From Epiperipatus broadwayi (lineage: Eukaryota > Animalia > Onychophora): a DNA stretch of 64,000 nucleotides. Position 1 is the first letter of the stretch. Each line of letters begins with the position of its first letter. Where the stretch lies: the NCBI GenBank assembly GCA_028023455.1, contig JAQFVV010000011.1, forward strand, positions 124,001-188,000, written 5' to 3'. Of the stretch, positions 421 to 58,967 are shown piece after piece. A program made the translations under genes and the position numbers. The notes beneath the pieces were generated by a model that worked only from the letters and a program-made list of their open reading frames with translations, was not told the DNA's origin and did not search any database.

Positions 421-1394
421 TATATTGGATAGCATATAATTAAAATAGTATATATTGATGCAGCATATATCACAGTTTCATTCTATTCTTCTTTCAGATA
501 TGTCACTATGGCCTGTAAAAATATAAAAAAGTACATTAATCATATAATGTTAGACTTATGGGTACTTATATGTTTATGCATATAAATAAATTATAATCCA
601 CAAAAATGTATGCTTATATATTTAATATTGATTTTTGCCTTCATTTATATTTGCAATTCAAATTTGCATATGCTTGTTTATCGGCATAATAAAGTGGTTT
701 CTTTCTTCTTTATAACCTAAAGCTGAGTGCACTTTTGGTGAAGTTCACTGTAATCATAAATTTCTTAAATTAATTATTGTTGCTGATTTACTTTTGCTGT
801 AATGTAATTATGCATGCATTTTTATTTAAATTAATTCATTTAAATATTTGATTTATTAGATAATTGGTCATTGTTTTCTCTTTTGTTATATTTCTATATA
901 GAGTATGATGACAGAAAAAGAAAAGTCAAGAATGTATGGTTTATTGCCAACCATAGAAATAATAAGGTTGAACATCATCTTAACTTATTAAGTAGTTTGT
1001 CATTAAATTATTGCTTTATCCAGAAGTTGAAGATTAAATTAAACATAAAAAAAAGATTGATACCCATCAATTAATTGGATGGCTAGTCAAGTTGGTGATT
1101 TAGCCTTTATGGCAATCTTTTCTGGAGGCAATAGTTTTTCTTTTTGATTTTTATGTTTCAGTGAATTAAAAGAATTAATTTTATGTCTAAATTCATTTCA
1201 TCCTTTTTTATGCTTACACAAGCTGTTAAAACAGTAGCAAACTTTCCACACAATAGTGCTACCTAGTAGAAGCCCCAGTAATCAATAGATGGTAATGGTT
1301 GTTGCATTATAATATTTATCCAATATCCTAAGGCTAATTTTTAGATTATGGCTTTTGTTAGTGAGTTGTCTTGATTTCAGAAGCTGTATAGTTG

Positions 1395-1760
1395 GATTTA
1401 ATGATGTGTTTTAGTGGTTTAATACTAATCCTATACAAAAAATAATGGTAACTATGGTTATTAAAAACCAAAAACATCATAATATGTAGACACTGAACTG
1501 AATCAGATCTGCATGGGAATACAAGAAAATACATTTGGATTGGCAACACTGTGTTTTTAATTTGCACTGATAATTTTATAGTTACCCAAAAAGATAACTG
1601 GTGGGTGCTAGCGGAAAGAGTACATTAGATCCAAATATCCAGGTGTATGGTTCCTGAATCTAAGACTCCTCACTGATGGAAAGTATAAGCTAGAAATTAG
1701 TATGGGAATATTGGATAGAAAGACACTGGATAGGGATTGAATGTACAATCTTTTACAATC
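1395..1760 (+). mobile_element. Family A HHR repeat, old degenerate monomer
   Basis: Colinear with the family A monomer. The HHR relic ctcctca-CTGATGG-aaagtataagcta-GAAA-ttagta-tgggaatattggat lies at 1658-1716. An opposite-orientation fragment lies at about 1225-1300. Confidence 0.75.
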
Positions 1761-4559
1761 TACTGATTACTAGAGCTTGCGCTAGGTGGCAGTATTGGAA
1801 AAAATTGTTGTTTTAATGAGACTAGTGTCAAAAGTCACATTCTGTATTCCTTGTCTTTGTACTATTTGCCTTGAAAGTATATTAAAGACCATAGTGATAT
1901 TATTAAAAAACAGGTAATTGCATTTGAATGAACTGAAGTCAGAATAAAAATATTTGCTGATTGTTAACTCTCTCATATTAGTCACTAAATAGATATTCTT
2001 TTTACACTTTCATTTACATCAGTTGGCAATCATTATTCTATTAAAAATGCTGTCATTTGTTTAGTGACAACTGCTATTAGTGTGATTAATTCAAATTTTT
2101 CTGCAGTGATTAACATTTTTTGTAAATGTAGCAATTCTTAAAGATGCACAAGAGTGTGGAATACAGTGTGATTGAGTTGGAGGTTTGTGAGATTGAGGTC
2201 TATGGACTGCAACTCAACTCTATTACTTCCAGTGCTCAAATTTCATATGACCTCCTGAGCAACAAAACATTTAAGTTCTTTGCTTTGTATAATTTGATAT
2301 AATGATAAAGTTGCAGACTTTGAGTTCAAGATCTATGAATCGCCATTTTAGTCCCAACACTTCTGGTGATTAAATGTCCTATAAACTCTTGAGCAAAAAA
2401 TCATTATTGTTACTTTGATTGTTGTTTTAAAAGTAACATTTGAGTAAGGTTAAATATTATTGAGAATCTGGCATAAAGGTTCTCTTTTTTTTTTTTGGAC
2501 TTTTTTGACTATATAATAGTTTATATCATTCTTACTCTAATATTGAAGAACATTACTCTTGACTATATAGAATTAAACTATAGCATATTAATTGTTTTAT
2601 TTATCTGTCATGCTTACTTAACTATAAATCTGAACTGTGTCTATTTGTCCTTGACCCTCACATTTGTCTTTTACATAAGGAGTAATTCTCTCCACCACCC
2701 ACATTTAGATAATACAGATTTTTCTAAACAAGAGAAAATCTGAATTCTCTGACCAACTTCATTGCCAAATGTACATATTAATTCTGTTCCAGTTTTTCAT
2801 TTTAATTGCATTTTCCATGTGTTACATTGAATTTTCTTCTATTGTTTGTAGAATGATAATAACCACAAGCTGTCTTAAAATATGCAAATTTTACTGCCAT
2901 GGGTTCTAGTTGACCACAGTAAAACATCACAGAATATTGATAGATATCTTTATATATTCCTTATTATGAGAAAACTTTTTTGGAGAAGATTTTTAAAATG
3001 AGTAGAAGTCTTGGGAACAATAGTGTGAGGCTTAGGTTTTTTTCCATATATAAGTCATGCTTGTACAGAAGTTATTAATAGTAATAGTATTGAATATACC
3101 CACTAGAAATTGATTTAGAAATGTTTTCTTGAAGAAATCATTATAAACACATTTTAACTGGATCGTGAAATAAATCATATTCCATAATCTTTCTTCTATT
3201 TGGCTTGGCATCTATTGCAGATGAAAAATAAGACATGAATGAGCAGGGTTTAAGCAATTCTTTCGGTTTTAATTTACCGTATCCTAAGTTTGAGTTCATA
3301 TAGACAATTAACTATTGTTATATTCTTAATCTCTAATAATGTGTAATGATGCTACTTCAGTCTGTTCACATAAAAGGGTATTCTCAAACTGGCATCCACT
3401 GAGATAGTTTATATTGTAACTGACCAAAATGTACAACCTACACAAAAATCATCTAAGGGCAATCTGCACGTGCGTTCCACATTTTGACATCACAGAACAA
3501 CAATGTCTTCTTTTACAGCCTGCTAAAATCACCTAGACACATAAGGCTCTCATCTTATTCTAATTAAATTATTGATTGTGAAATAATGACAAATTGCTAA
3601 AAAAATAATGAGATATTACAATTTATTTATGTATATACTAAAAGTCAACACATACAACAGTATAACTGGCTTGTCAAATGATTCTGAAAAGATATCAACA
3701 TGCTGCATAGATTCGTGATCATAAGTAATTATTATCATAGTTTTAAGATTTAACAACCTTGTAAATTGAGGTTGATAATACTTGAGACAAAGATAAATCA
3801 TTCTAAAAACTAGTTAAATAACTGACTGCTACAATTAAAATAATACAGAAAAGGTAAAGTGCATGAAATAACACCTGTATTACATTAAACTATGATACAC
3901 TAATAAATACATGTACCCAATATATGCAAAAGTAGGAATAAGCTTCTACTGCATAATATTGCTCAGAGTAAATGTAGAATGTGTAAGAGTGTGACCAGCA
4001 GACACATATGAATCATATCAAAACTTGTATGAAAACAAGGCAGATAATATACGGTAAGAATTTTCAATCTACTGCATACTATTGCACTAAATAATGTAAT
4101 GAATGTAAGTGGCCAAGGTGTAACATCCTGAGACAGGACAGCCTAAATTAAAGCAGGTTCTTGAACCTGGAGTGATTGTTTGCTTAAAACTACGAACTAT
4201 TTATATACAATCAATGATAGCCTTAATCTAGCCAGATTGAATTCCATTCAGGATTTGTTTAATTATAGGTTTAAAATGTTGCTTATACTTTGAATTAAAT
4301 GGAAATAATGTGTTTAATTGAAATTAATAAATCATAAGTATGGTCAGAGATTACTATAATAAAATTTAATTGCTTTATATAAAATTATTGCTAATTAAAT
4401 TGTGGCATGATAAAGAAAATAACACAACAATCTCTTGCCATACCTGCTCATAAACAGATTTAACAATTATTGACTAAAACATTTTTATTAGAGAAAAAAA
4501 TAATAATAGTAATGCTAGAGTTTTATAATATTCTTTTAAAGTTCATATCTGTTTCTTAC

Positions 4560-5475: not shown

Positions 5476-5656
5476 GTCTTTACTCTTAACATATTAAAAC
5501 AGGCAAAACTCTCTATATGTATTGCCATTCAGTGCAGGCTAGAATAATCAATGGATGCCAGAAGGCTTTGCATAAAATCCCCATCTAGTGCCTACTCATC
5601 CAATATCCCCAGACTAAAAAAAAAAAAAAGGTGATCATGTGATATTTATTGGCTTA
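5476..5656 (-). mobile_element. Family A fragment broken inside the HHR core, then an A-run and an inverted piece
   Basis: ttaaaacaggcaaaactc...ccaatatccccagacta, then A14, then ggtgatcatgtgatatttattggctt in the opposite orientation. Confidence 0.85.
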
Positions 5657-12159: not shown

Positions 12160-12220
12160 CCACTAAACATCACACGATCACCATTTCTTATGCTTGTATG
12201 GACAGTTTTGTCTGTTTTAA
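12160..12220. mobile_element. Family A short fragment with internal orientation flip
   Basis: aaacatcacacgatcaccatttcttatgcttg is followed by opposite-strand tatggacagttttgtctgttttaac. Confidence 0.65.
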
Positions 12221-19121: not shown

Positions 19122-19622
19122 ATATAGTGAGTTTTGCCTGTTTTATCAACAGTTATACACAAGCATAAGAAGAGGTAGTCATGTGATGTTTATTGGCTTA
19201 AAACCAATCCTGCCTAATAGGATAGTGGTGGCTATGGTTATTAAAGAACCAAAGACAGCAAAATGTATGGGTACTGAACTGGGTTCAGACCCTTAATGGG
19301 CTTGGATTGAAAATATTAAGGTGTTTTCAATTTAAGACTCATAGTTTTGTAGTTAAATGGAGATAAAAGGTGGTTGCTGGAGGGTTGCATTAGATCCTAA
19401 GATCTAGATGCAGTGCACTCAGATCCAAGGTTCCTCACTGACAAAGGCCATAAGCCGGAAACTAGTCTGGGGATATGGATGGGGATTTTATGCACAACCC
19501 TCCTGGCATCCATTGATTTCTCCAGCTTGCTGTGTGTGGCAATATATATAGTGAGTTTTGCCTGTTTTAACAACAGTTATACACAAGCATAAGAGGAGGT
19601 AGTCATGTGACTTTATTGGCTT
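19122..19622 (+). mobile_element. Family A: about 1.2 monomers with ~78-bp terminal redundancy (period 424 bp)
   Basis: atagtgagttttgcctgtttta...ttattggctt occurs at 19124 and 19548. An HHR with mutated core lies at 19423-19480. Confidence 0.9.
19423..19480 (+). ncRNA. Family A type I hammerhead, G8A-mutated (CTGACAA)
   Basis: atccaaggttcctca CTGACAA aggccataagccg GAAA ctaGTC tggggatatggat. Confidence 0.7.
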
Positions 19623-25527: not shown

Positions 25528-25597
25528 GCGTTGGTGGTTGAATGGTTAGCACAGCCGCCTTACAAGCAGTTGTCCCGGATTCGCTTCCGGCTGATGC
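25528..25597 (+). pseudogene. tRNA-Gly(TCC)-derived pseudogene/SINE, anticodon now TAC
   Basis: GCGTTGGTGGTTGAATGGTTAGCACAGCCGCCTTACAAGCAGTTGTCCCGGATTCGCTTCCGGCTGATGC aligns along its length with eukaryotic tRNA-Gly(TCC). T-arm and stems are damaged. Imperfect TSD aataaaa..aactataa. Confidence 0.8.
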
Positions 25598-26876
25598 TTT
25601 GACATATGAATAAAAAAAACTATAAATGACAGATTTATTATTGAGCAAATAATTTAATTTTAATAAAAATAAGATTATTTTTTTATAACTTGTTATAAAA
25701 TTTTGTGCAAAATTATGTATATTTATATAGTCTACTGATTTCACATAAATTCTGTATACTATTATATTTCTGATCCATTGATAATAAATTATCCTCACCT
25801 ACTATGAGTATTTGTGTTGGAGAATTGATAGATTCGGTGCCTGCTCTATGTATGTGTGACCATTATTGGAGACAATCAAGCTTAGAAATCTGGCAGTAGA
25901 CATAATTCTGACTGCTATTTTTATGTGGGTGTTGGAGTGTATTAAACTGTTGTTTAACTGGTGACTGTAGTTTTATTGGTTGAAGTATATGCAAAGTGAG
26001 AGATATTAATTTGGAATATTTACTGCAAATTTAAAAGATTTGTTATATAGACATAAGCAAGGATTAAATATCGTAGTCTGGATGAAATTTTTTTTTGTGG
26101 TCAGGTTTAGTTGTACTTTCCCTATGCTAGAGAATAAATCTTTCATAAAATCTGGATTGATATGCTAGAAAACAAAGAAATATAATTCTAAGCCCATGGT
26201 TTACCTTTACTCTTTATCTTTTAAGAAATATTTGTTTTTATTATATTTTGTCAGCCCCCCCTCCCCCATTGCATTTATCATATAATTTTTTCATTTCCTG
26301 CAATAGTATATTTACAAGTATTCTTTCTTCTTTTTCTTTAAACCGATCAAATTATTACGTCCCAGACATAACAATTCATAAGCTTTCTAAGTTTACATTC
26401 TTAAAATTAAAACGTTATTAATTCTCATATATTTTTTCCTCACTTTTATTTTCTCCACTTAGCTAATTTTCTAAGCAAATCTATGAGACTTATAAATTTT
26501 TAACAATCATTCTCATAGCTGAATTATTATACATTTCAAATTTGCTACCAATTTTTACTATTAGTGGTCGCCATTTTTAAAGTTTAATTTCACCTTCGGT
26601 CTTCACTATTCTATTGTTAGCAATCAAATGCTTCGAAATTATTCATTATTTATTATTAATTCATACTTAACGCTTATTAATTATCTTCTTTAAATAAATA
26701 CTATGTACCTTAATAACGGAAGACTTTTTTAAATTCATTAAAAGTCTGAAATTAGAATAAAGTCTGTTAGGGGGTGACAAGTAATGGCAAATAACACATA
26801 TCCATTTATCAAAATATGAATTTTTTTCTACAGTACAGGCTTTTTCATAACTGCACTTATATATGTAATATATAGG

Positions 26877-28232: not shown

Positions 28233-29448
28233 ACTTTAAATCAGCACTGAAAAGTTAGTCAACTTTCTTCTAGTTCTTCATAATATCATTCACCTGTTTC
28301 CTGTTTTATATTATAGAAAAAAATCTTTCTTAATTAATTTTTTTATTCATCACTTATAAACTTTCTTTATATCTAGATAGTTTTTTTTTAATATTCCATT
28401 TTTTTTTATAACTCTATTTACAATTCTTTACTAGTATTGCTTTCTGATTGTTATTTAATTACTATTAGTATATTTTTAATCTTTAAATTTGTTTATTAAA
28501 ATATTTTTTGTTTATTTTATCCACCTTATCCTTTTATCTGTCTGATTGAAGATTTATATGCACATCTTCCGTTTTTGTTAACAAATTTTTGCCATTCTAA
28601 TATAGTAAGCTTACTTTTCTTTATGATTATTTTATTATCATCAGTACAAATTCTTCTAAGTGTATTATATAGAATAAAATTTATTACCCCAGCAAAATTC
28701 TCTAATCATTGAGTACAATGCGATAATATGTTAATATCCAGATCATTTTATGGATTTTTTTGACTTCAAAGTGAGAACTAGGATTTAAAGCTGAAGTGAT
28801 ATACTTAGTAGCCTAAAATTAAAAAAAACCTTAATATTATTCCCTAGTAAACTCACTTGCAAATAAGAGTAATATTAACAATATCATCTAATTTTCTTAT
28901 ATACTTATTAAAATACTTCCCAAGCAGTTCTTATGTTTGCTTTTGAAGCATATGTGGTTATTTGATATTGTTGTTGATATACTGTTATATTATTAAATTT
29001 CTCTTTATATTACAAAAGTAAATTTAAGCACTAGATAGATTTAATGCACAAACCTTTTAGTATCCATTAGGTGGCACTGTTGTATGGAGAGTTTGTAACT
29101 GTTTTCAAAGTAAATGTAGCCATAGGATTAACATTCATAGAAGTATGATAACTTTTTCATAACTGATAACAGCAATTCTATATTATAATATATATTGCAA
29201 TGTAAGTAGACATTATACATTGACCAAACAGAGCAAGAAATAAAAATATATCAGCTCAAGTAAATTTAATAATCAACTACCCTTTTCATGCTTGTTTCTT
29301 CCCTAACTGGGAAAGGATTTTGCTTAAAACTGAACTATTAAAAAGACAATCGTATTTAATTTAATCTAGTGGTGCAACACTATTCATGTTAATTATTGAA
29401 ATAGTTAAGGCTTTATTTCATTAGCGTTTGAAATCAATATATACATAT

Positions 29449-41199: not shown

Positions 41200-42108
41200 T
41201 TATATATCTTTAGGCATTTGTTTATTATCGGTTAATAAACTTACTATAGGTCGTTGCGGCCAGTCCGTGTTCGGATGGTATTCTCTGAAATGATTCTCTA
41301 ATTCAGTTTGAATGGAAAAGGATACGCGGCACCCCGAACACTTATATGGTGTAGCAAATATCCTTAATGACGACCTTTTTCTTTTTTTTATTGGAACTTT
41401 TTGAGAAAGTTTTCCATCATCGGAAAAGTCATTTTGTTCTATTTGTACTGGAGAACATTGCAAGCTTACATTTGTGGCGGAAGAAGTTTGATTTATTTTT
41501 GATTGCTCTGTTGCAAAATGCGCAAGAAAAGCTTGAGGATCTAAATACGCACACATTTGCTCGTTACGCGAATCGTGTACTGCATTATTAGAAAAACTAT
41601 GTAATTCAACAGGCATTTTATGATGAACTTTTTTATGCCTTTCTAAATTACTTTTATGGCTTGTAGCGTAGTGACAGAGGGAACATGCGAAATCCTTTTG
41701 TCCACTATGTACGCTAAGGTGTCGCTTAAGCAAAGCTTTCCGGCAAAAGTTTCTTCCGCAAAGATTGCAGCAGTACCCGTTTTTATGGAAAAGTAAGGAA
41801 TGATTTCGTAAGGCTGCTTTGCATGAAAAACGGGTATTACAGCATTCCAAAACACGTGCACTTTCTTCATGCATAGTAGAAATGTGTCTTTTTAAATTGT
41901 TCTTGCGATCCGTACTATAACTGCACAAATCACAGTCAAATAATTTTTTAGATCGCCCATCTTCTAAGGTCGAATCCGTGATTCCAAACTGGTGGTCCAT
42001 GGGCTGTAAAGAAGAAGAAACAGCGTGTGTTGACACCATACTGTCCGGAATCCCAAACTGATGGTCCATGGCCTGTAAAGTAGAGGTAATAGTATGTGTT
42101 GCCACCAT
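41200..42108 (-). CDS. C2H2 zinc-finger protein, 302 aa, single exon, uncharacterised
   Basis: Longest ORF in the window. Four clustered fingers (CDLC..HISTMH; atypical CC..HSLLFH; CNLC..HLSVH with SGQKDF linker; CSLC..HKKVH) plus a C-terminal finger (CSGC..HFREYH). KKRKR NLS-like motif. In-frame stop upstream of the ATG. Confidence 0.92.
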   Translation of the reverse strand: MVATHTITSTLQAMDHQFGIPDSMVSTHAVSSSLQPMDHQFGITDSTLEDGRSKKLFDCDLCSYSTDRKNNLKRHISTMHEESARVLECCNTRFSCKAALRNHSLLFHKNGYCCNLCGRNFCRKALLKRHLSVHSGQKDFACSLCHYATSHKSNLERHKKVHHKMPVELHSFSNNAVHDSRNEQMCAYLDPQAFLAHFATEQSKINQTSSATNVSLQCSPVQIEQNDFSDDGKLSQKVPIKKRKRSSLRIFATPYKCSGCRVSFSIQTELENHFREYHPNTDWPQRPIVSLLTDNKQMPKDI

Positions 42109-43770: not shown

Positions 43771-44005
43771 TACTCTCAAATTAAAACAGGCAAAACTTAC
43801 TATATATATATTGCCACACACAGCAAGCCAGAGTAATCAATGGATGTCAGAAGGCTTATGCATAAAATCCCCATCTAGTGCCTACTCATCCAATATCCCC
43901 AGACTACTTTCTGGCTTATGGTCTTCATCAGTGAGGAGCCTTGGATCTGAGAGCAAACCTTCTGGCATCCATTGATCACTCTGGCTTGCTGTGTGTGGCA
44001 ATATA
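43771..44005 (-). mobile_element. Family A fragment with HHR (43888-43946) inside a fold-back
   Basis: Minus strand atccaaggctcctca CTGATGA agaccataagcca GAAA gtaGTC tggggatattggat. 43956-44005 is an inverted copy of 43808-43857. Confidence 0.9.
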
Positions 44006-47562: not shown

Positions 47563-47644
47563 TGGCACAACATATAGTGAGTTTTGTCTGTTTTAACAAC
47601 AGTTATACACAAGCATAAGAGGAGGCGGTCATGTGATGTTTATT
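47563..47644 (+). mobile_element. Family A short fragment (no HHR)
   Basis: atatagtgagttttgtctgttttaacaacagttatacacaagcataagaggagg.gtcatgtgatgtttatt matches 19546-19620. Confidence 0.8.
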
Positions 47645-48059
47645 ATTCTCAAATGTAAATCTTTTTAATATCACAATGTAATATAAATTACTGTTGCATT
47701 GTGATAAATATTCTTCAAAATATGACAATATGCTAGGTTCTACATTTTGATAGTCTGAAATTTTAATCAAATACCTTTTCATAATCTATAAATCCAAAGC
47801 CTAATGGCAACTTAATATGACTTCTTTAGATACATGGATGTAACTCATTAAACCTATTTTTAAATCAGTTTTTTTTTTTACTTGTTTTAATTGGTTAGAA
47901 TCCAAAGTTCACTATAGACAAGTTGTAATATTTTGGTAAGGATTTTGTGTTGAATTGATAGAAGACTGATAAGTCTATAATTTCTAATATCTTCTTTGTC
48001 ACTTTTCTTAAATATCAATATTACTATTACATTCTTCTAATCATCTGGCGTTATTGGAA

Positions 48060-48185
48060 AAACTCTCCATACAGTAGCGTCACTCGGTGCAAACCAGAGT
48101 AATCAATGGATGTTGGAAGGTTTGTGCATAAAGTCCTTATTTTCCCAGACTAGTTTATAGCTTATGACTTTCATCAGTGAGAAGT
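48060..48185 (-). mobile_element. Family A fragment with degenerate HHR (GAAA changed to TAAA)
   Basis: Minus strand ttctca CTGATGA aagtcataagcta TAAA ctaGTC tgggaa (48138-48184). Confidence 0.8.
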
Positions 48186-48249
48186 TACTGCATTGAGAGT
48201 TTTGCCTCTGTGTAAACAGCTTGTGTAAGCATAAAGAATGGTGTTCTAT

Positions 48250-54425: not shown

Positions 54426-55139
54426 TGTATTATTTTTTTATTTTTTTATTAAGGATTGTAATACTTTTTTTAAATAAATGATGTTTTATCAAATTTTAGC
54501 ATTTACATATTCTTAAGATAAAATTTTCGCACATAATGTATGAAAATTTATAAATCCAAACAAATTAGAAATAATAATAATAATAAAAAACTATTTAGGT
54601 ACTCAGAGATGATAAGATTCGACATCAGGAGTGACTACTTAAGTTAGTTTAAATTTGTAATAACTTTATTAAACTCATATAATAACTGAGATAATAATTT
54701 TCTTAGCTTTGAATCGTTTGAGAGGTTTTAATTTTATATGGATCTATTCTTTCTCTAGTTTATTATTATTAACATGAGTATTTTAACAATGCTATAGATT
54801 AATGAGAATCAATAATAATTATACTTTAGCAACAATATATATATATATATAAGTATTTTTTGAATAGCTGATTGCAGGGGGAAAGGCTTCTCCCAATAGA
54901 AAAACAATAATGTAAGTCATTATTAACATTTGACCATTTTTTCATGATTGTTTTTAGCTAAGAATGTTTAAATATCCATTTAAGCCAATAAGCATCACAT
55001 GGTCACCATTTCTTATGCTTGCTCTTAAGTGTTGATAAACAGAGCAAAACTCTCCATACAGTATTGCCACCTGTGCTAAACAGAGTAATCAATGGATGCC
55101 AGAAGGCTTGTGCATAAAATCCCTATCTAATGCCTACTC

Positions 55140-55198
55140 ATCCAATATCCCCAGACTAGTTTCTGGCTTGTGGCCTTCGTCAGTGAGGAGCTTTGGAT
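55140..55198 (-). ncRNA. Type I hammerhead ribozyme, intact core (CTGACGA)
   Basis: ATCCAA agc TCCTCA CTGACGA a GGC cacaa GCC a GAAA c ta GTC / TGGGGA ta TTGGAT. Predicted cut between 55154 and 55153. Confidence 0.88.
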
Positions 55199-55798
55199 CT
55201 GAGAGCACTGCATCTAAATCTTAGGATCTAATGCAAGCCTCTAGCAACCACCTTTTATCTCTACTTAACTACAAAACTATGAGAATGAAATTGAAAACAC
55301 ATAAAATATTTTCAATCTAAGCTCAATAGCTTATATAGTCATATGGGTCTGAACTCAGTTCAGCACCCATACATTTTGGTGTCTTTGGCTCTTTTACAAC
55401 CATAGCCACCACTATACTATTAGGCAGGATTGGTGTTAAACCATTAAGCATCACATGATCACATTTCCTATACTAGCACATTAATTGTTGATAAACAGAG
55501 CAAAACTCTCCATACAGTATTGCCACCTGTGCTAAACAGACTAATCAATGGATGCCAGAAGGCTTGTGCATAAAATCCCTATCTAATGTCTACTCATCCA
55601 ATATCCCCAGACTAGTTTCTGGCTTGTGGCCTTCATCACTGAGTTCAGACCCATATGACTATATAAGCTATTGAGCTTAGATTAAAAATATTTTTTGTGT
55701 TTTCAATTTCATTCTCATAGTTTTGTAGTTAAGTAGAGATAAAAGGTGGTTGCTAGAGGCTTGCATTAGATCCTAAGATCTAGATGCAGTGCTCTCAG

Positions 55799-55857
55799 AT
55801 CCAAAGCTCCTCACTGATGAAGGCCACAAGCCAGAAACTAGTCTGGGGATATTGGAT
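55799..55857 (+). ncRNA. Type I hammerhead ribozyme, intact core (CTGATGA)
   Basis: CTGATGA 55814-55820, stem II GGC/GCC, GAAA 55834-55837, GTC 55841-55843, stem I TCCTCA/TGGGGA plus ATCCAA/TTGGAT. Confidence 0.9.
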
Positions 55858-56292
55858 GAGTAGGCATTAGATAGGGATTTTATGCACAAGCCTTCTGGCA
55901 TCCATTGATTACTCTGTTTAACACAGGTGGCAATACTGCATCAAGATCTTAGGATCTAATGCAACCCTCCAGTAGCCACCTTTTATCCCTACTTAACTAC
56001 AAAACTATGAGACAAATTGAAAACACTATAATCAGCTTATATAGTCATATAGGTCTGAACTCAGTTCAGTACCTATATGTTTTGGTGTTTTTGGTTCTTC
56101 AATAACCATAACCACCACTATCCTATTATCCAGGATTGGTTTTAAACCAATAAACAACACATGTTCACCATTTCTTATGCTTGCTCTTAATTGTTATTAA
56201 AACCGGCAAAACTTTCTATACATATTGCCACTCAGTGCAAGCCAGAGTAATCAATGGATGCCAGAAGGTTTGTACATTTTTAGTGCCTACTC

Positions 56293-56351
56293 ATCCAATA
56301 TCCCCAGACTAGTTTTTGGCTTGTGGCCTTCATCAGTGAGGAGCCTTAGAT
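56293..56351 (-). ncRNA. Type I hammerhead, G12A-mutated (AAAA)
   Basis: ctcctca CTGATGA aggccacaagcca AAAA ctaGTC tgggga. Confidence 0.7.
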
Positions 56352-58967
56352 CTGAGAGCACTGCACCTAGATCTTAGGATCTAATGCAACCATCCAGAAG
56401 CCACCTTTTATCTTTACTTAACTACAAAACTATGAGATTTAAATTGAAAACATGGTAATATTTCCAATTCAAGCTCATCAGCTTATATAGTTATATAGGT
56501 CTGAACTCAGTTCAGTACCTATACATTTTGATGTCTTTGTATCTTTAATAACCATAGTAACCACTATCCTATTAGGCAGGATTGTTTTTAAGCCAATAAA
56601 CATCACATGATCACCATTTCTTATGCTTGCTTTCAACTGTTATTAAAACACGCAAAACTCTCTATACATATGTGTTTTAATAACAGTTAAGAGCAAGCAT
56701 AAGAAATGGTGATCATGTGATGTTTGTTGGCTTAAAACCTATCTTGCCTAATAAGATAGCAGTGCTATGGTTATTACAGAACCAAAGACACCAAAATGTA
56801 TAGGTACTGAACTGAATTCTGACCAAATGACTATATAAACTGATGAGCTTGGATTGAAAATATTATAGAATTTTCAAGTTAAGTAGAGATAAAAGGTGGC
56901 TGCTGGAGGATTGCATTAGATCCTAAAATCTAAGTACAGTGCTCTCAGATCCATGGCACAACCCATAAACTAGTCTGGGGATATTGGATGAGTATGCACT
57001 AGATGGGGATTTTAAACACAAGCCTTCTGGCATCCATTGATTACTCTGGCTTGCACTGAGTGGCAATATGTATAGAGAGGGTTGCTTGTTTTAATATCCA
57101 TTTACTGACCAATAATTAGCTGGTTGCTGAGATAATTTCCCAAAAAATAAAAACCTAAGAATCTACCCCCTAGTCCAAGTTATAATTCAGGTTGGATGCA
57201 TAAGCATGTAGATGCAATATATGGAAGCAGAATAAAGATACTAAAGTAATGTAAAAAAATATATTTCAAAACTACATAATAATTTCATTAGTAAAATTAA
57301 TTGTGGTTTTGAAAGTTAATGACATCATTTCCAGATTTATTCTTACAAATTTTATTTACCTCCAGCTTTAAGCTATGATATAATGATGATGATGATAATA
57401 GTAATATTTATTATCAAGCAGATTATTGAGAGAATATAATTAAAGATATAAGAGCATGTAAAGGCCCAGAACATAGTATCAACGATTTAATGGTTAAACT
57501 TATTTAAAACTAACAACATGTAGTAATAGGATATTAATACAGTACTCCTAATTAAAATAGTATTTAGTACAAAAATCATATGTAGAGAATATAAATAAAA
57601 TTAAAAAGTTATGCTTGGGTATCATATGAAGACACCATAAAAAAAAATATCAACTAAAAAACAAGCTATTTCAAAACACAGAGAAAGCCACTGGTATTGG
57701 GGATACTAAAAATATTTCTTGTAACATCTGGATGATGATGATTATAAGTCATTTTAGAGTTTTTTTTGTAGGTAAGTAATGCGTATACTTTTTTAAATGG
57801 CGAAATAAAATAAAAACTGAAAAATTTTTATTTTAAAAAGTTTGTATGTGTGTTCAAAACAGTCATGTTAAGTGAGGCTTCTTTACCAAATAAAATAACT
57901 ATTTTCATGGTGCTCTATAAATTTCATATTCTCAAAATCTATGTTGTTGCTTTTTTAATCAAATTTAAATTTTATTGATTACATCTATTTTATTTTCCTT
58001 TAACTAAAAAGGATACGGTTTAAATTTGAATTTAAAGTTGCCTTTCTTTAGATGCACTTTTTTCTTTTAGGTAATCTTCATTTTCACTTTCTGAAAAATA
58101 ACTTTATATTGGTATATTTTTCCAAATGCTCTTCTTGACGCTCAATTTCTTAAGTAAAAGAAAGTCTACTTGCCATACTCTAATACTATCTCTATACTCT
58201 TGCATTCTTTATGAAGGTAAATCACTATTATGACTCCGAATGTTCAAAAAATGACCTTTGATTCAAGATTATCAAACAATATGAAATGGACCATTGCTTA
58301 TTACCAGATTTCAATAGAAAGAAGGGGATTCAAAGAATTTAATAATTATTTATTTAATAATCCTTTTTAAAAGCAAACACATTTACACTGAGTGTTTATT
58401 TTATTTTGAATTCACATTTGTTACATTGAAAATGATAATACTTTATTTCGATAGAGATGAACTTCTTAGCTTAAGAATCACTTTATTTAATTTATAATGA
58501 AATATAAACTTTTCAAATTGTCTTCCGAAACATGAAAGTAAAGCATTTTATTATTCAATTAGTTTTTCCTACGTATTTTTACAATGACGAGCATATTTAG
58601 TTGAATTGTTTAATAATAACTCTTATCAATATCAATATTTTATTTTTTAAATAGAATTTAGTTAATTATTTCCAATATACTTTGAAAAAATTCTAAGACT
58701 CGCGAATGTAGATTTTTTTTATTCATCTGTATTATATCATTATAAAAATTACACTCATTTAAGTCTATTATTAATTTTAACAACAATTCTATTTAACTAT
58801 AATATCACGCCTATAATTTTAATAAATATTTTTCAGAATTTGACATCATGGGTCTATATTGTGATGTTCCAAAATTATATTCACTATCTAATATAAAGAA
58901 AGGAATAAACTTTCGGTCATGCGCTCTTCGTGACTTATTTATTACAATCATCATCTAAATGTTTATA

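Follow-up and report, generated by a model that had tools for sequence, protein, structure and literature searches.

A young non-LTR retrozyme family of the onychophoran Epiperipatus broadwayi with a predicted variant hammerhead and insertions that point to Penelope-like machinery

INTRODUCTION

Metazoan non-LTR retrozymes (Cervera and de la Pena 2020, PMC7229834) are short, non-coding, low-GC units, with published lengths of 150 to 450 bp, that carry one type I hammerhead ribozyme, occur in tandem copies and at high copy number, give self-paired monomer RNAs, and co-occur with Penelope-like elements (PLEs). The repeat family of Epiperipatus broadwayi described here resembles them in all of these respects, the self-pairing being predicted in our case, and is a further member of this known kind; the kind itself is not new. 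It differs from the described non-LTR retrozymes in that most of its copies are short, dispersed twin-arm insertions with target site duplications (TSDs) and not long tandem arrays, and in that an A·A mismatch lies at the base of helix II in its hammerhead.

Hallmarks of PLE insertions are partial tandems, an adjacent inverted and 5'-truncated copy, and a tail of 30 to 40 bp that is confined to one end (Craig et al. 2021, PMC8557442). A PLE protein cuts and extends both strands, and it begins reverse transcription at a pair of neighboring internal sites that mark the limits of the tail (Frangieh et al. 2024, PMC11167929). Partial tandems, an inverted 5'-truncated neighbor, a tail at one end, and TSDs are also found in our family, as are two apparent reverse transcription start sites downstream of the hammerhead and a minimal helix III. 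Unlike PLEs, the unit has no reverse transcriptase (RT) or GIY-YIG ORF, and its tail is about 45 to 50 nt long; unlike that of the minimal PLE hammerhead, its helix I is long and internally looped, as in the "canonical" retrozyme ribozymes. Animal retrozymes have recently been proposed to be non-autonomous PLE derivatives, on the basis of co-occurrence and similarity to PLE pseudo-LTRs (pLTRs) in vertebrates (bioRxiv 10.64898/2026.07.22.740005). The present family adds a different kind of support for this proposal, since many independent insertions have left DNA scars that agree with what is reported of the biochemistry of a PLE protein (priming of both strands, RT starts at two internal sites, and a tail on one side only).

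Two further systems are close to this one. Newt and salamander satellite 2 and the axolotl ribozymes HHR_Amex1 and HHR_Amex2 (PMC7229834) have a similarly short palindromic helix III, with predicted activity as dimers. The weakly active HHR_Amex2 is also the sole precedent that we found for a mismatch at the base of helix II, which is U·U in the axolotl ribozyme and a purine-purine A·A here. The unit sequence of our family is unrelated to theirs, and it includes a subfamily of 6,290 copies with a U-A pair instead of the mismatch. The other is a second retrozyme family in the same genome (loci L001 to L010), whose hammerheads score 32 to 40 bits with Rfam Hammerhead_1. The two families have in common an identical proximal helix I (UCCUCA/UGGGGA), a two-part helix I, a palindromic helix III, a twin-arm or tandem arrangement, and a 25-nt hairpin block (q76-100, 88%). 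The second family differs in its unit of about 410 to 425 bp, its otherwise unrelated sequence, its CUGAAGA core, and its helix II, which is GACC/GGUC with a canonical G10.1-C11.1 pair. Between the two families, helix II shows two double (compensatory) changes, and the palindrome of helix III is kept (ACUAGU versus ACCGGU).

RESULTS AND DISCUSSION

A dispersed, young, and non-coding family

All coordinates refer to the window, that is, the whole stretch of 64,000 nucleotides that was analyzed. The repeat unit is 456 bp long at 54983-55438, and its genomic consensus, taken as the majority of 45 copies and serving only to measure divergence, is 454 nt long with a GC content of 39%. In a trimer of the unit, no stretch free of stop codons exceeds 61 aa, so that the original prediction of an ORF-free unit of about 456 bp is borne out. 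The unit carries no tRNA, 5S, or 7SL head, and a Pfam scan of the 13 longest ORFs of the window returned only a C2H2 zinc-finger protein, with no RT or endonuclease. The predicted fold of the monomer RNA has a minimum free energy of -144.2 kcal/mol, compared with -114.9 +/- 5.7 kcal/mol for shuffled sequences (z = -5.2), indicating a high degree of self-pairing, as in the retrozyme circles of PMC7229834. The unit of 454 to 456 bp thus combines short length, low GC content, lack of coding capacity, a single type I hammerhead, and tandem copies, as those elements do.

Copy number, which had been listed as a point to check, was counted through the exact 35-nt hammerhead core, which occurs 32,908 times genome-wide (reversed control, 0). 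Tandem arrays with a 456-bp period and up to 5 to 6 units exist elsewhere in the genome. Mean identity of 45 full units to their own consensus is 98.3%. The family is dispersed and young, and these figures support the earlier claim of a recently active, non-coding, hammerhead-bearing family of the retrozyme type. The sequence also occurs in contigs under four other organism labels; there the portion of the unit with the hammerhead is shared more widely than any other, and the best-supported of the listed differences inside the hammerhead motif are N7 and the internal loop of helix I. The motif was not found in print in the literature searched.

An older insertion hit by a younger one

The block at 54971-57104 had been read as a single 2.1-kb concatemer with one TSD. 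Segment identities instead divide it into an older insertion, O, which owns the TSD, and a younger insertion, Y (55035-55941), nested inside it. O is 78 to 85% identical to the young consensus and Y is 98 to 99% identical. TRF found no tandem array in the block, in which partial copies, some direct and some inverted, form a mosaic with three inversion points. The block has no evident host function, and the element is best annotated as an ordinary repeat. The segments are as follows.

54971-54982, no strand: left TSD copy of O, AATATCCATTTA; 54966-54982 and 57088-57104 agree at 16 of 17 positions
54983-55034, minus strand: outer "tail" end of the O minus arm, q456 to 405; 92% identical to old copies and 82% to the young consensus
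55035-55438, minus strand: Y minus arm, q404 to 1; 99.0% identical to the young consensus; starts at the canonical "short" end, in register with O
55441-55643, minus strand: Y minus arm continued, q454 to 252
55638-55941, plus strand: Y inverted plus arm, q80 to 383; 98.4% identical to the consensus
55935-56668, minus strand: rest of the O minus arm, q232 to 1, q454 to 1, and q456 to 379; 78 to 85% identical to the young consensus
56676-57096, plus strand: O inverted plus arm, q400 to 456 and q1 to about 407; ends at the canonical short end
57093-57104, no strand: right TSD copy, AATATCCATTTA; its first bases overlap the terminal bases of the element (microhomology)

The 12-bp direct repeats that had been reported do stand at both borders, but they belong to O, and since the right copy overlaps bases that can be aligned to the end of the element, the true TSD would be 8 to 12 bp long with added microhomology. 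The two arms of Y have a private variant in common (q202 G>C), and both intact ribozyme motifs sit in Y. Its right junction is non-canonical, with q383 joined to q232 of O and about 172 bp of O (q404 to 233) missing. An older insertion with its TSD was struck later by a younger copy, in register at the older tail boundary; gene conversion could be an alternative origin of this in-register left junction. Units A and B of the Y minus arm differ at N7, which does not fit copying from a single monomeric circle, unless a CpG decayed later.

A hammerhead with a mismatch at the base of helix II

The motif reads exactly as it had been spelled out in the original prediction. A strict hammerhead descriptor matched exactly twice in the window and not once in 200 simulated windows, confirming the two copies reported as intact; the three reported as damaged are one G12A copy, one truncated at C3, and one that has lost its core, as claimed. 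These are as follows.

55799-55857, plus strand: intact type I hammerhead motif with a CUGAUGA core, predicted cut after 55843; 33.8 bits with model R1
55140-55198, minus strand: intact type I hammerhead motif with a CUGACGA core, predicted cut between 55154 and 55153; 33.5 bits with model R1
56296-56354, minus strand: G12A hammerhead within O
55597-55643, minus strand: hammerhead truncated at C3 by the inversion junction, within Y
56953-56997, plus strand: hammerhead that has lost its core, O plus arm

Both intact motifs have every core base (C3 U4 G5 A6 N7 G8 A9, G12 A13 A14, A15.1-U16.1, and H17), with C17 at the predicted cut site. The core bases are kept in the 45-copy consensus, and the invariant ones are kept in both the old and the young subfamilies. 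Helix I is open and consists of 6 + 6 bp with an internal loop. The other two helices are closed: helix II consists of three G-C pairs under the A10.1·A11.1 mismatch at its base, and helix III has 2 bp and a 2-nt loop, forming the minimal palindrome ACUAGU. Activity as a dimer is predicted because helix III is short and palindromic. The minimum free energy fold recovers helices I and II of the hammerhead. The motif thus has the three helices of a type I hammerhead, with a non-canonical position 10.1/11.1. The fold proposed originally stands as regards the looped stem I and the minimal palindromic stem III, but it did not flag the departure at A10.1·A11.1, a mismatch that is present in most copies.

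The Infernal scan with Hammerhead_1 that had been suggested as a check did not report the motif. In scans that covered the window, the block, and a stretch of 86 nt, no Rfam hammerhead model matched at the gathering threshold (34 bits for Hammerhead_1), nor at E<=10 on either 2.5 kb or 86 nt, although Rfam RF00163 (Hammerhead_1) does find other hammerheads in the same genome. A covariance model, R1, was derived exclusively from seven Rfam-positive hammerheads that belong to another retrozyme family of the genome. It gives both intact motifs the scores listed above, with E values of about 5e-7, indicating homology to accepted hammerheads in sequence and structure; helix II is skipped as a local end in these alignments. 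Rfam-based scans overlook a very abundant hammerhead variant.

Insertion anatomy

In all 16 complete two-armed insertions elsewhere in the genome (16/16), and in O, the arms lie head to head, with one short end and one tail end. The 3' ends of the element face outward, and its 5'-truncated ends abut at an inversion point whose position varies and where they overlap by a few bases. One outer end falls at q402-414 and the other at q443-456, about 119 nt and 165 nt downstream of the hammerhead cut position, respectively. Since the insertions end away from the cut site, cleavage is not necessary to explain the DNA copies. TSDs are mostly 11 to 16 bp long (17 measured; median 13, range 6 to 16). 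Arms span up to five or more units, cycling into the same 454- to 456-bp sequence and never into coding sequence, and the 3' ends have no poly(A), microsatellite, or other simple-repeat tail.

Partial tandems, an inverted 5'-truncated copy, a tail at one end, and a TSD make up the insertion signature of PLEs, and the anatomy points specifically to PLE machinery, presumably acting in trans. The original prediction had named PLE or RTE machinery; the twin arms, one-sided tail, and TSDs uphold the former, and the lack of a poly(A) or microsatellite tail counts against the latter. Autonomous PLEs are present in the same genome, in which we found 10,244 GIY-YIG candidates with open frames of up to 901 aa. 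All 150 candidates that were scored exceeded the Pfam cut-off, and some lie in tandem or inverted pairs. For a partner search, 30 PLE loci were chosen through the GIY-YIG domain, and blastn and an nhmmer family profile found no unit sequence shared with their 3' regions, barring two incidental retrozyme matches. One of these (L069) stems from an independent retrozyme insertion, 110 bp long and flanked by a 13-bp TSD of its own.

Variants that spread

Variants in five classes were counted genome-wide as exact 35-nt patterns. C and U at N7 are both very common. U10.1, by which a U-A pair replaces the A·A mismatch, has 6,290 copies and is often found in the two arms of the same insertion, versus 114 copies, all singletons, for the non-pairing transition G10.1. 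G12A occurs in 865 copies, nearly all singletons, and is at baseline, and G8A occurs in 4,405 copies, about 10 times the G>A baseline, as expected because it lies in a CpG site. Paired G8A copies were considered as a sign that dead ribozymes are mobilized, and this was rejected, as their excess vanishes after the CpG rate and the C7 subfamily are accounted for. The counts suggest that only variants compatible with the ribozyme (C or U at N7 and the pair-restoring U10.1) spread. With its youth and its size (about 33,000 perfect cores), the family lends itself to a simple mutational-spectrum test of the ribozyme variants that are able to spread, and thus offers a convenient means of asking whether mobilization needs self-cleavage and circularization.

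Origin of the block

The block probably (about 0.8) consists of copies of a non-autonomous, non-coding non-LTR retrozyme with a predicted hammerhead, inserted by PLE machinery, in which an old insertion was later hit by a young one. A different reading retains mobilization by PLEs but takes the hammerhead to be a dead or nearly dead passenger derived from a PLE pLTR, with no self-processing or circles and with read-through multimers as templates. The failure of the Rfam models to recognize the motif, the A·A mismatch combined with a helix III of two pairs, and the N7 difference between two units of one arm (the Y minus arm) would all fit such a passenger, as would cDNA ends at a distance of 119 and 165 nt from the cut site, and cDNAs that pass through cut sites; moreover, the runs that contain the sequence are contigs, none of them on record as RNA. 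We nevertheless regard a passenger as unlikely. The invariant core bases are kept in the consensus and in old and young subfamilies alike, the only variants among the five classes to exceed the mutational baseline are those at N7 and U10.1, with G12A remaining at baseline, and the compensatory changes in helix II relative to the second family, together with the kept palindrome in helix III, speak against a passenger. In addition, one natural retrozyme hammerhead is published as active although the base of its helix II is mismatched (PMC7229834).

That the unit is instead the pLTR or the 3' end of an autonomous coding PLE, and its copies ordinary 5'-truncated PLE insertions, is improbable. PLE pLTRs do bear hammerheads, 5'-truncated PLE copies have the same twin-arm and tail anatomy (PMC8557442, PMC4209133), and relatedness of retrozymes and pLTRs has been reported (10.64898/2026.07.22.740005). 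However, the unit lacks an ORF, arms longer than one unit re-enter the same 454- to 456-bp sequence, up to at least five times, and never enter coding sequence, and none of the 30 sampled PLE 3' regions shares sequence with the unit apart from the two incidental matches, of which one is an insertion flanked by a TSD of its own. A SINE-like element mobilized by a LINE such as RTE is very improbable, since the 3' ends have no poly(A) or simple-repeat tail, the unit has no tRNA, 5S, or 7SL head, and the head-to-head arms with a one-sided tail in 16/16 insertions and in O are a PLE signature unseen in LINE target-primed insertion (PMC8557442); only the general abundance of retroelements in the genome speaks for it. 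We give hardly any credence to a satellite-like tandem repeat that was spread by recombination or segmental duplication and has a flanking repeat by chance. Tandem arrays exist in the genome, and the classical hammerhead repeats of newts and crickets were first described as satellites, but the family has tens of thousands of dispersed short insertions with defined ends, each with a different TSD, no TRF array was found in the block, and for this base composition a chance 12-mer repeat exactly at both borders is estimated at about 5e-7 per placement.

For the retrozyme reading, a mechanism may be sketched. A PLE RT/GIY-YIG protein would make staggered cuts in the two target strands and prime reverse transcription on both of them. 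For each strand, copying would begin at either of two positions inside the retrozyme RNA, some 119 and 165 nt downstream of where the hammerhead is predicted to cut, and microhomology would join the two cDNAs. As the cDNA crosses hammerhead cut sites and several units, the template would be either an uncleaved multimer or a religated circular monomer that is copied round and round. Monomers able to circularize would arise from multimeric transcripts through the action of the hammerhead, most likely as a dimer formed through its palindromic helix III.

A more tentative possibility, which we put forward with some doubt, is that ribozyme competence is needed for propagation and that the PLE RT, whose start is internal and not at the 3' end of an RNA, copies hammerhead-made circular RNAs round and round. 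If so, this would explain why arms of several units extend across cut sites and why starts are fixed at 119 and 165 nt downstream of the cut, as well as the spread of hammerhead-compatible variants only (C or U at N7, the pair-restoring U10.1, and a G·U-compatible change of the helix III palindrome), and A10.1·A11.1 would be a tolerated natural variant adjacent to the core that standard models miss. Pairs of units are 97.6% identical within insertions and 96.8% identical between insertions, a difference so small that homogeneity is not decisive for rolling-circle copying.

Other copies in the window

Four dispersed hammerhead relics had been reported in the window, and all were found again, starting at 19432, 43896, 48142, and 1667. 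They belong to the following copies of the family.

19123-19621, plus strand: older one-armed copy, q381 to 454 and q1 to 447; G8A hammerhead at 19432-19473
43781-44003, minus strand: truncated two-armed copy; hammerhead relic at 43896-43937
48057-48243, minus strand: decayed copy; hammerhead relic at 48142-48183
1198-1797, plus strand: old two-armed copy, about 67% identity; hammerhead relic at 1667-1708

A hammerhead-bearing repeat in mosaic arrangement

Our results demonstrate that the hammerhead-bearing repeat feature is real, and that the first reading of it was largely right once corrected. The reference unit is 456 bp (window 54983-55438), and its positions (q1-q456) are counted in hammerhead sense, on the reverse complement of that interval. 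The unit, when blasted against the AT-rich window (27.6% GC; source assembly, 5.6 Gb), gave a mosaic pattern rather than a plain tandem array, and no tandem array was found in the block (54971-57104) by TRF.

Segments of the block, with unit positions
54983-55438, minus, q456 to q1
55441-55643, minus, q454 to q252
55638-55941, plus, q80 to q383
55935-56144, minus, q232 to q1
56147-56590, minus, q454 to q1
56591-56668, minus, q456 to q379
56676-57096, plus, q400 to q456, then q1 to about q407

Further copies of the family lie in the window at 1198-1797, 5492-5654, 12160-12196, 19123-19621, 29025-29108, 43781-44003, and 47573-48243, and four of these further copies keep recognisable hammerhead relics. 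The window also holds a tRNA-like sequence (25528-25598, plus; 32.2 bits, barely over the Rfam gathering score) and a 302-amino-acid open reading frame with C2H2 zinc fingers (41200-42108, minus), the sole Pfam-recognisable coding sequence among the 13 longest open reading frames.

The hammerhead motif

The hammerhead string of the original prediction is found letter for letter in the window, and all of the copy statuses that it assigned, as well as the four dispersed relics, were recovered.

55799-55857, plus, hammerhead, intact
55140-55198, minus, hammerhead, intact
56296-56354, minus, hammerhead with G12A
55597-55643, minus, hammerhead cut at C3 by the inversion junction
56953-56997, plus, hammerhead with core lost

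By direct reading, the invariant core is complete (C3 U4 G5 A6 N7 G8 A9; G12 A13 A14; A15.1-U16.1; C17). Helix I is in two parts (UCCUCA/UGGGGA and AUCCAA/UUGGAU) flanking an internal loop, helix II has an A10.1·A11.1 mismatch over three G-C pairs, and helix III has two pairs within a palindrome of six bases (ACUAGU). The mismatch lies at the base of helix II, as in axolotl HHR_Amex2, a ribozyme whose cleavage is weak in the monomer and good in the dimer (PMC7229834).

The proposed Infernal check against Rfam was negative: the motif did not match the Rfam hammerhead families at the gathering threshold, or at E<=10 on either 2.5 kb or 86 nt. The same Rfam model detects other hammerheads of this genome with 32-40 bits, and these belong to a second retrozyme-like family with a unit of about 410-425 bp (loci L001-L010). 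A strict hammerhead descriptor permitting the single mismatch gave exactly two matches in the window, the two intact copies, and 0 in 200 simulated windows. With a covariance model trained solely on seven Rfam-positive hammerheads of the second family, the two intact copies reached 33.8 and 33.5 bits (E about 5e-7), and the relics were recovered as well. Set against the second family, the 456-bp unit has an identical proximal helix I (UCCUCA/UGGGGA), and in its helix II two base pairs have both partners exchanged with pairing retained (A-U to G-C; C-G to G-C); helix III of the second family is likewise palindromic with another centre (ACCGGU). The descriptor, the covariance model, and this comparison support the assignment of the motif of the 456-bp unit as a predicted hammerhead.

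Two nested insertions in the window

The segments split into two identity classes. Identity to the young consensus is 99.0% at 55035-55438, 98.0% at 55441-55643, and 98.4% at 55638-55941; it is 82% at 54983-55034 (92% to old copies) and 78-85% in the four segments of 55935-57096. From these identities, we infer that the block represents two insertion events, a younger one nested in an older one, and not the single 2.1-kb concatemer initially proposed. The older insertion has its tail end (q456) at 54983 and its short end (about q402-407) at 57091-57096. To it belongs the flanking repeat AATATCCATTTA, with 16/17 positions in agreement when 17 bp are compared; the direct repeats predicted as a 12-bp TSD are thus present, but they are those of the older insertion alone and do not mark a single event for the whole block.

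The younger insertion (55035-55941) is embedded in the older one and contains both intact ribozyme motifs. A private variant at q202 is common to both of its arms, which fits one event. Its right end is non-canonical: q383 joins q232 of the old arm with a 7-nt overlap, and the old arm lacks about 172 bp there. Its left end is a canonical short end, in register with the old copy at about q411. Targeting of the existing tail region by the endonuclease of a Penelope-like element (PLE), which reportedly recognises that region of existing copies (PMC11167929), would fit this in-register junction; gene conversion may also have produced it.

Insertion anatomy and the RNA template

Loci from the rest of the genome repeat one architecture, in which minus-oriented units are followed by plus-oriented units, so that the 3' ends face outward. 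Where the 5'-truncated ends of the arms meet, they overlap by a few bases; the position of this inversion point varies, and the longest arms contain five to six units. One outer end lies at q402-414 (...GCUCUGUUUA(UCAA)) and the other at q443-456, with one end of each kind in 16/16 complete two-armed insertions. Of 17 TSDs measured, most are 11-16 bp long (median 13, range 6-16), and they frequently overlap the last bases of the element. PLEs are described as leaving partial tandems, a neighbouring inverted copy truncated at its 5' end, and a short tail confined to one end (PMC8557442), and a PLE protein cuts and extends both target strands and begins reverse transcription from two neighbouring sites inside the RNA, which bound the tail (PMC11167929). 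The twin arms and one-sided tail of the 456-bp family correspond to this insertion signature (PMC8557442, PMC11167929). Counted from the predicted hammerhead cut (between q285 and q286), the two putative reverse transcription start sites lie downstream at about 119 and 165 nt, a geometry resembling that of the PLE system of PMC11167929. The anatomy thus agrees with the suggested mobilisation in trans by Penelope-like machinery; the RTE alternative is unsupported, as no poly(A) or microsatellite tails were found on insertions of the family.

Because the cDNA crosses cut sites and several units, its template would be either a multimer left uncleaved or a circle that was closed by re-ligation and copied repeatedly. 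The computed fold of the monomer RNA between predicted cut sites (55154-55609, minus) is at -144 kcal/mol (z = -5.2), a strong self-pairing of the kind reported for retrozyme circles.

The genome holds a very large number of PLEs (10,244 GIY-YIG candidates, open frames up to 901 amino acids), and a sample of 30 PLE loci yielded no autonomous partner of the 456-bp unit. At G000:C12394:20942626-20950119 of the assembly and other places, PLEs whose open frames measure about 870-900 amino acids occur in tandem about 3.1 kb apart or as inverted pairs, and are candidate autonomous partners. About 800 bp downstream of one PLE GIY-YIG remnant there is a very small insertion with two arms that belongs to the old subfamily (L069:589-715, minus strand; a tail arm of about 30 nt plus q281-395). 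This match was rejected as the PLE's own end, as it is an independent insertion with its own 13-bp TSD (CCTTTAATTTATT).

Family size, age, and variants

The assembly contains 32,908 instances of the 35-nt core with Y at N7 (reversed control, 0); among the first 100 listed, C7 accounts for about 42% and U7 for 58%. Mean identity to the consensus is 98.3% (45 full units, 22 loci), and the family is therefore young, in line with the recent activity originally proposed. Single-variant counts demand that the other 34 positions be perfect, and serve as an internal mutational baseline.

Table. Single variants of the 35-nt core
A>G at 10.1: 114 copies; singletons, no pair made
G12A: 865 copies; singletons almost throughout
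G8A: 4,405 copies; about ten times the G>A baseline, expected from the CpG in CUGACGA
U10.1 (transversion): 6,290 copies; A·A becomes a U-A pair

Both arms of one insertion often carry U10.1, and with its 6,290 copies this variant is therefore a propagated subfamily. Among the five variant classes counted, only fold-preserving or fold-improving ones exceed the mutational baseline. One insertion (L035:640-3448) has six hammerheads over both arms, each combining U10.1 with an A>G substitution in the loop of helix III; helix III is ACUGGU (ACGGGU in one unit), and self-pairing is still possible via G·U. In young repeat copies genome-wide, mutation is strongly biased to A/T, a specific G>A (865 copies) outnumbering a specific A>G (114) about 7.6-fold, and the CpG site lying about a further 10-fold above that. 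Among the matches listed for contigs under four other organism labels, the stretch with the hammerhead is shared more widely than any other portion of the unit, and within the motif the differences with the best support fall at N7 and in the internal loop of helix I.

Placement and a second family

Judged from sequence, the 456-bp family is placed among the non-LTR retrozymes in the sense of PMC7229834, with insertion anatomy of the PLE type, and would agree with the recently proposed derivation of animal retrozymes, as non-autonomous elements, from PLEs (10.64898/2026.07.22.740005). It adds to an already known class; the motif sequence was not found printed in the literature searched. Particular to this family are conservation of the A·A position alongside a subfamily that restores the pair, a motif that escapes the Rfam models, and clean twin-arm and tail statistics.

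The second family also has tandem and inverted arms, and its sequence is unrelated to the 456-bp family. Its hammerhead has a CUGAAGA core, GACC/GGUC, and ACCGGU (e.g., L003:1493-1549, minus strand). A 25-nt perfect hairpin of the 456-bp unit (window 55339-55363, q76-100; CUGAAC-UGA-GUUCAG with flanking G/C pairs) is common to the second family with 88% identity. Because the two units are otherwise unrelated, this hairpin may be a functional module common to both families.
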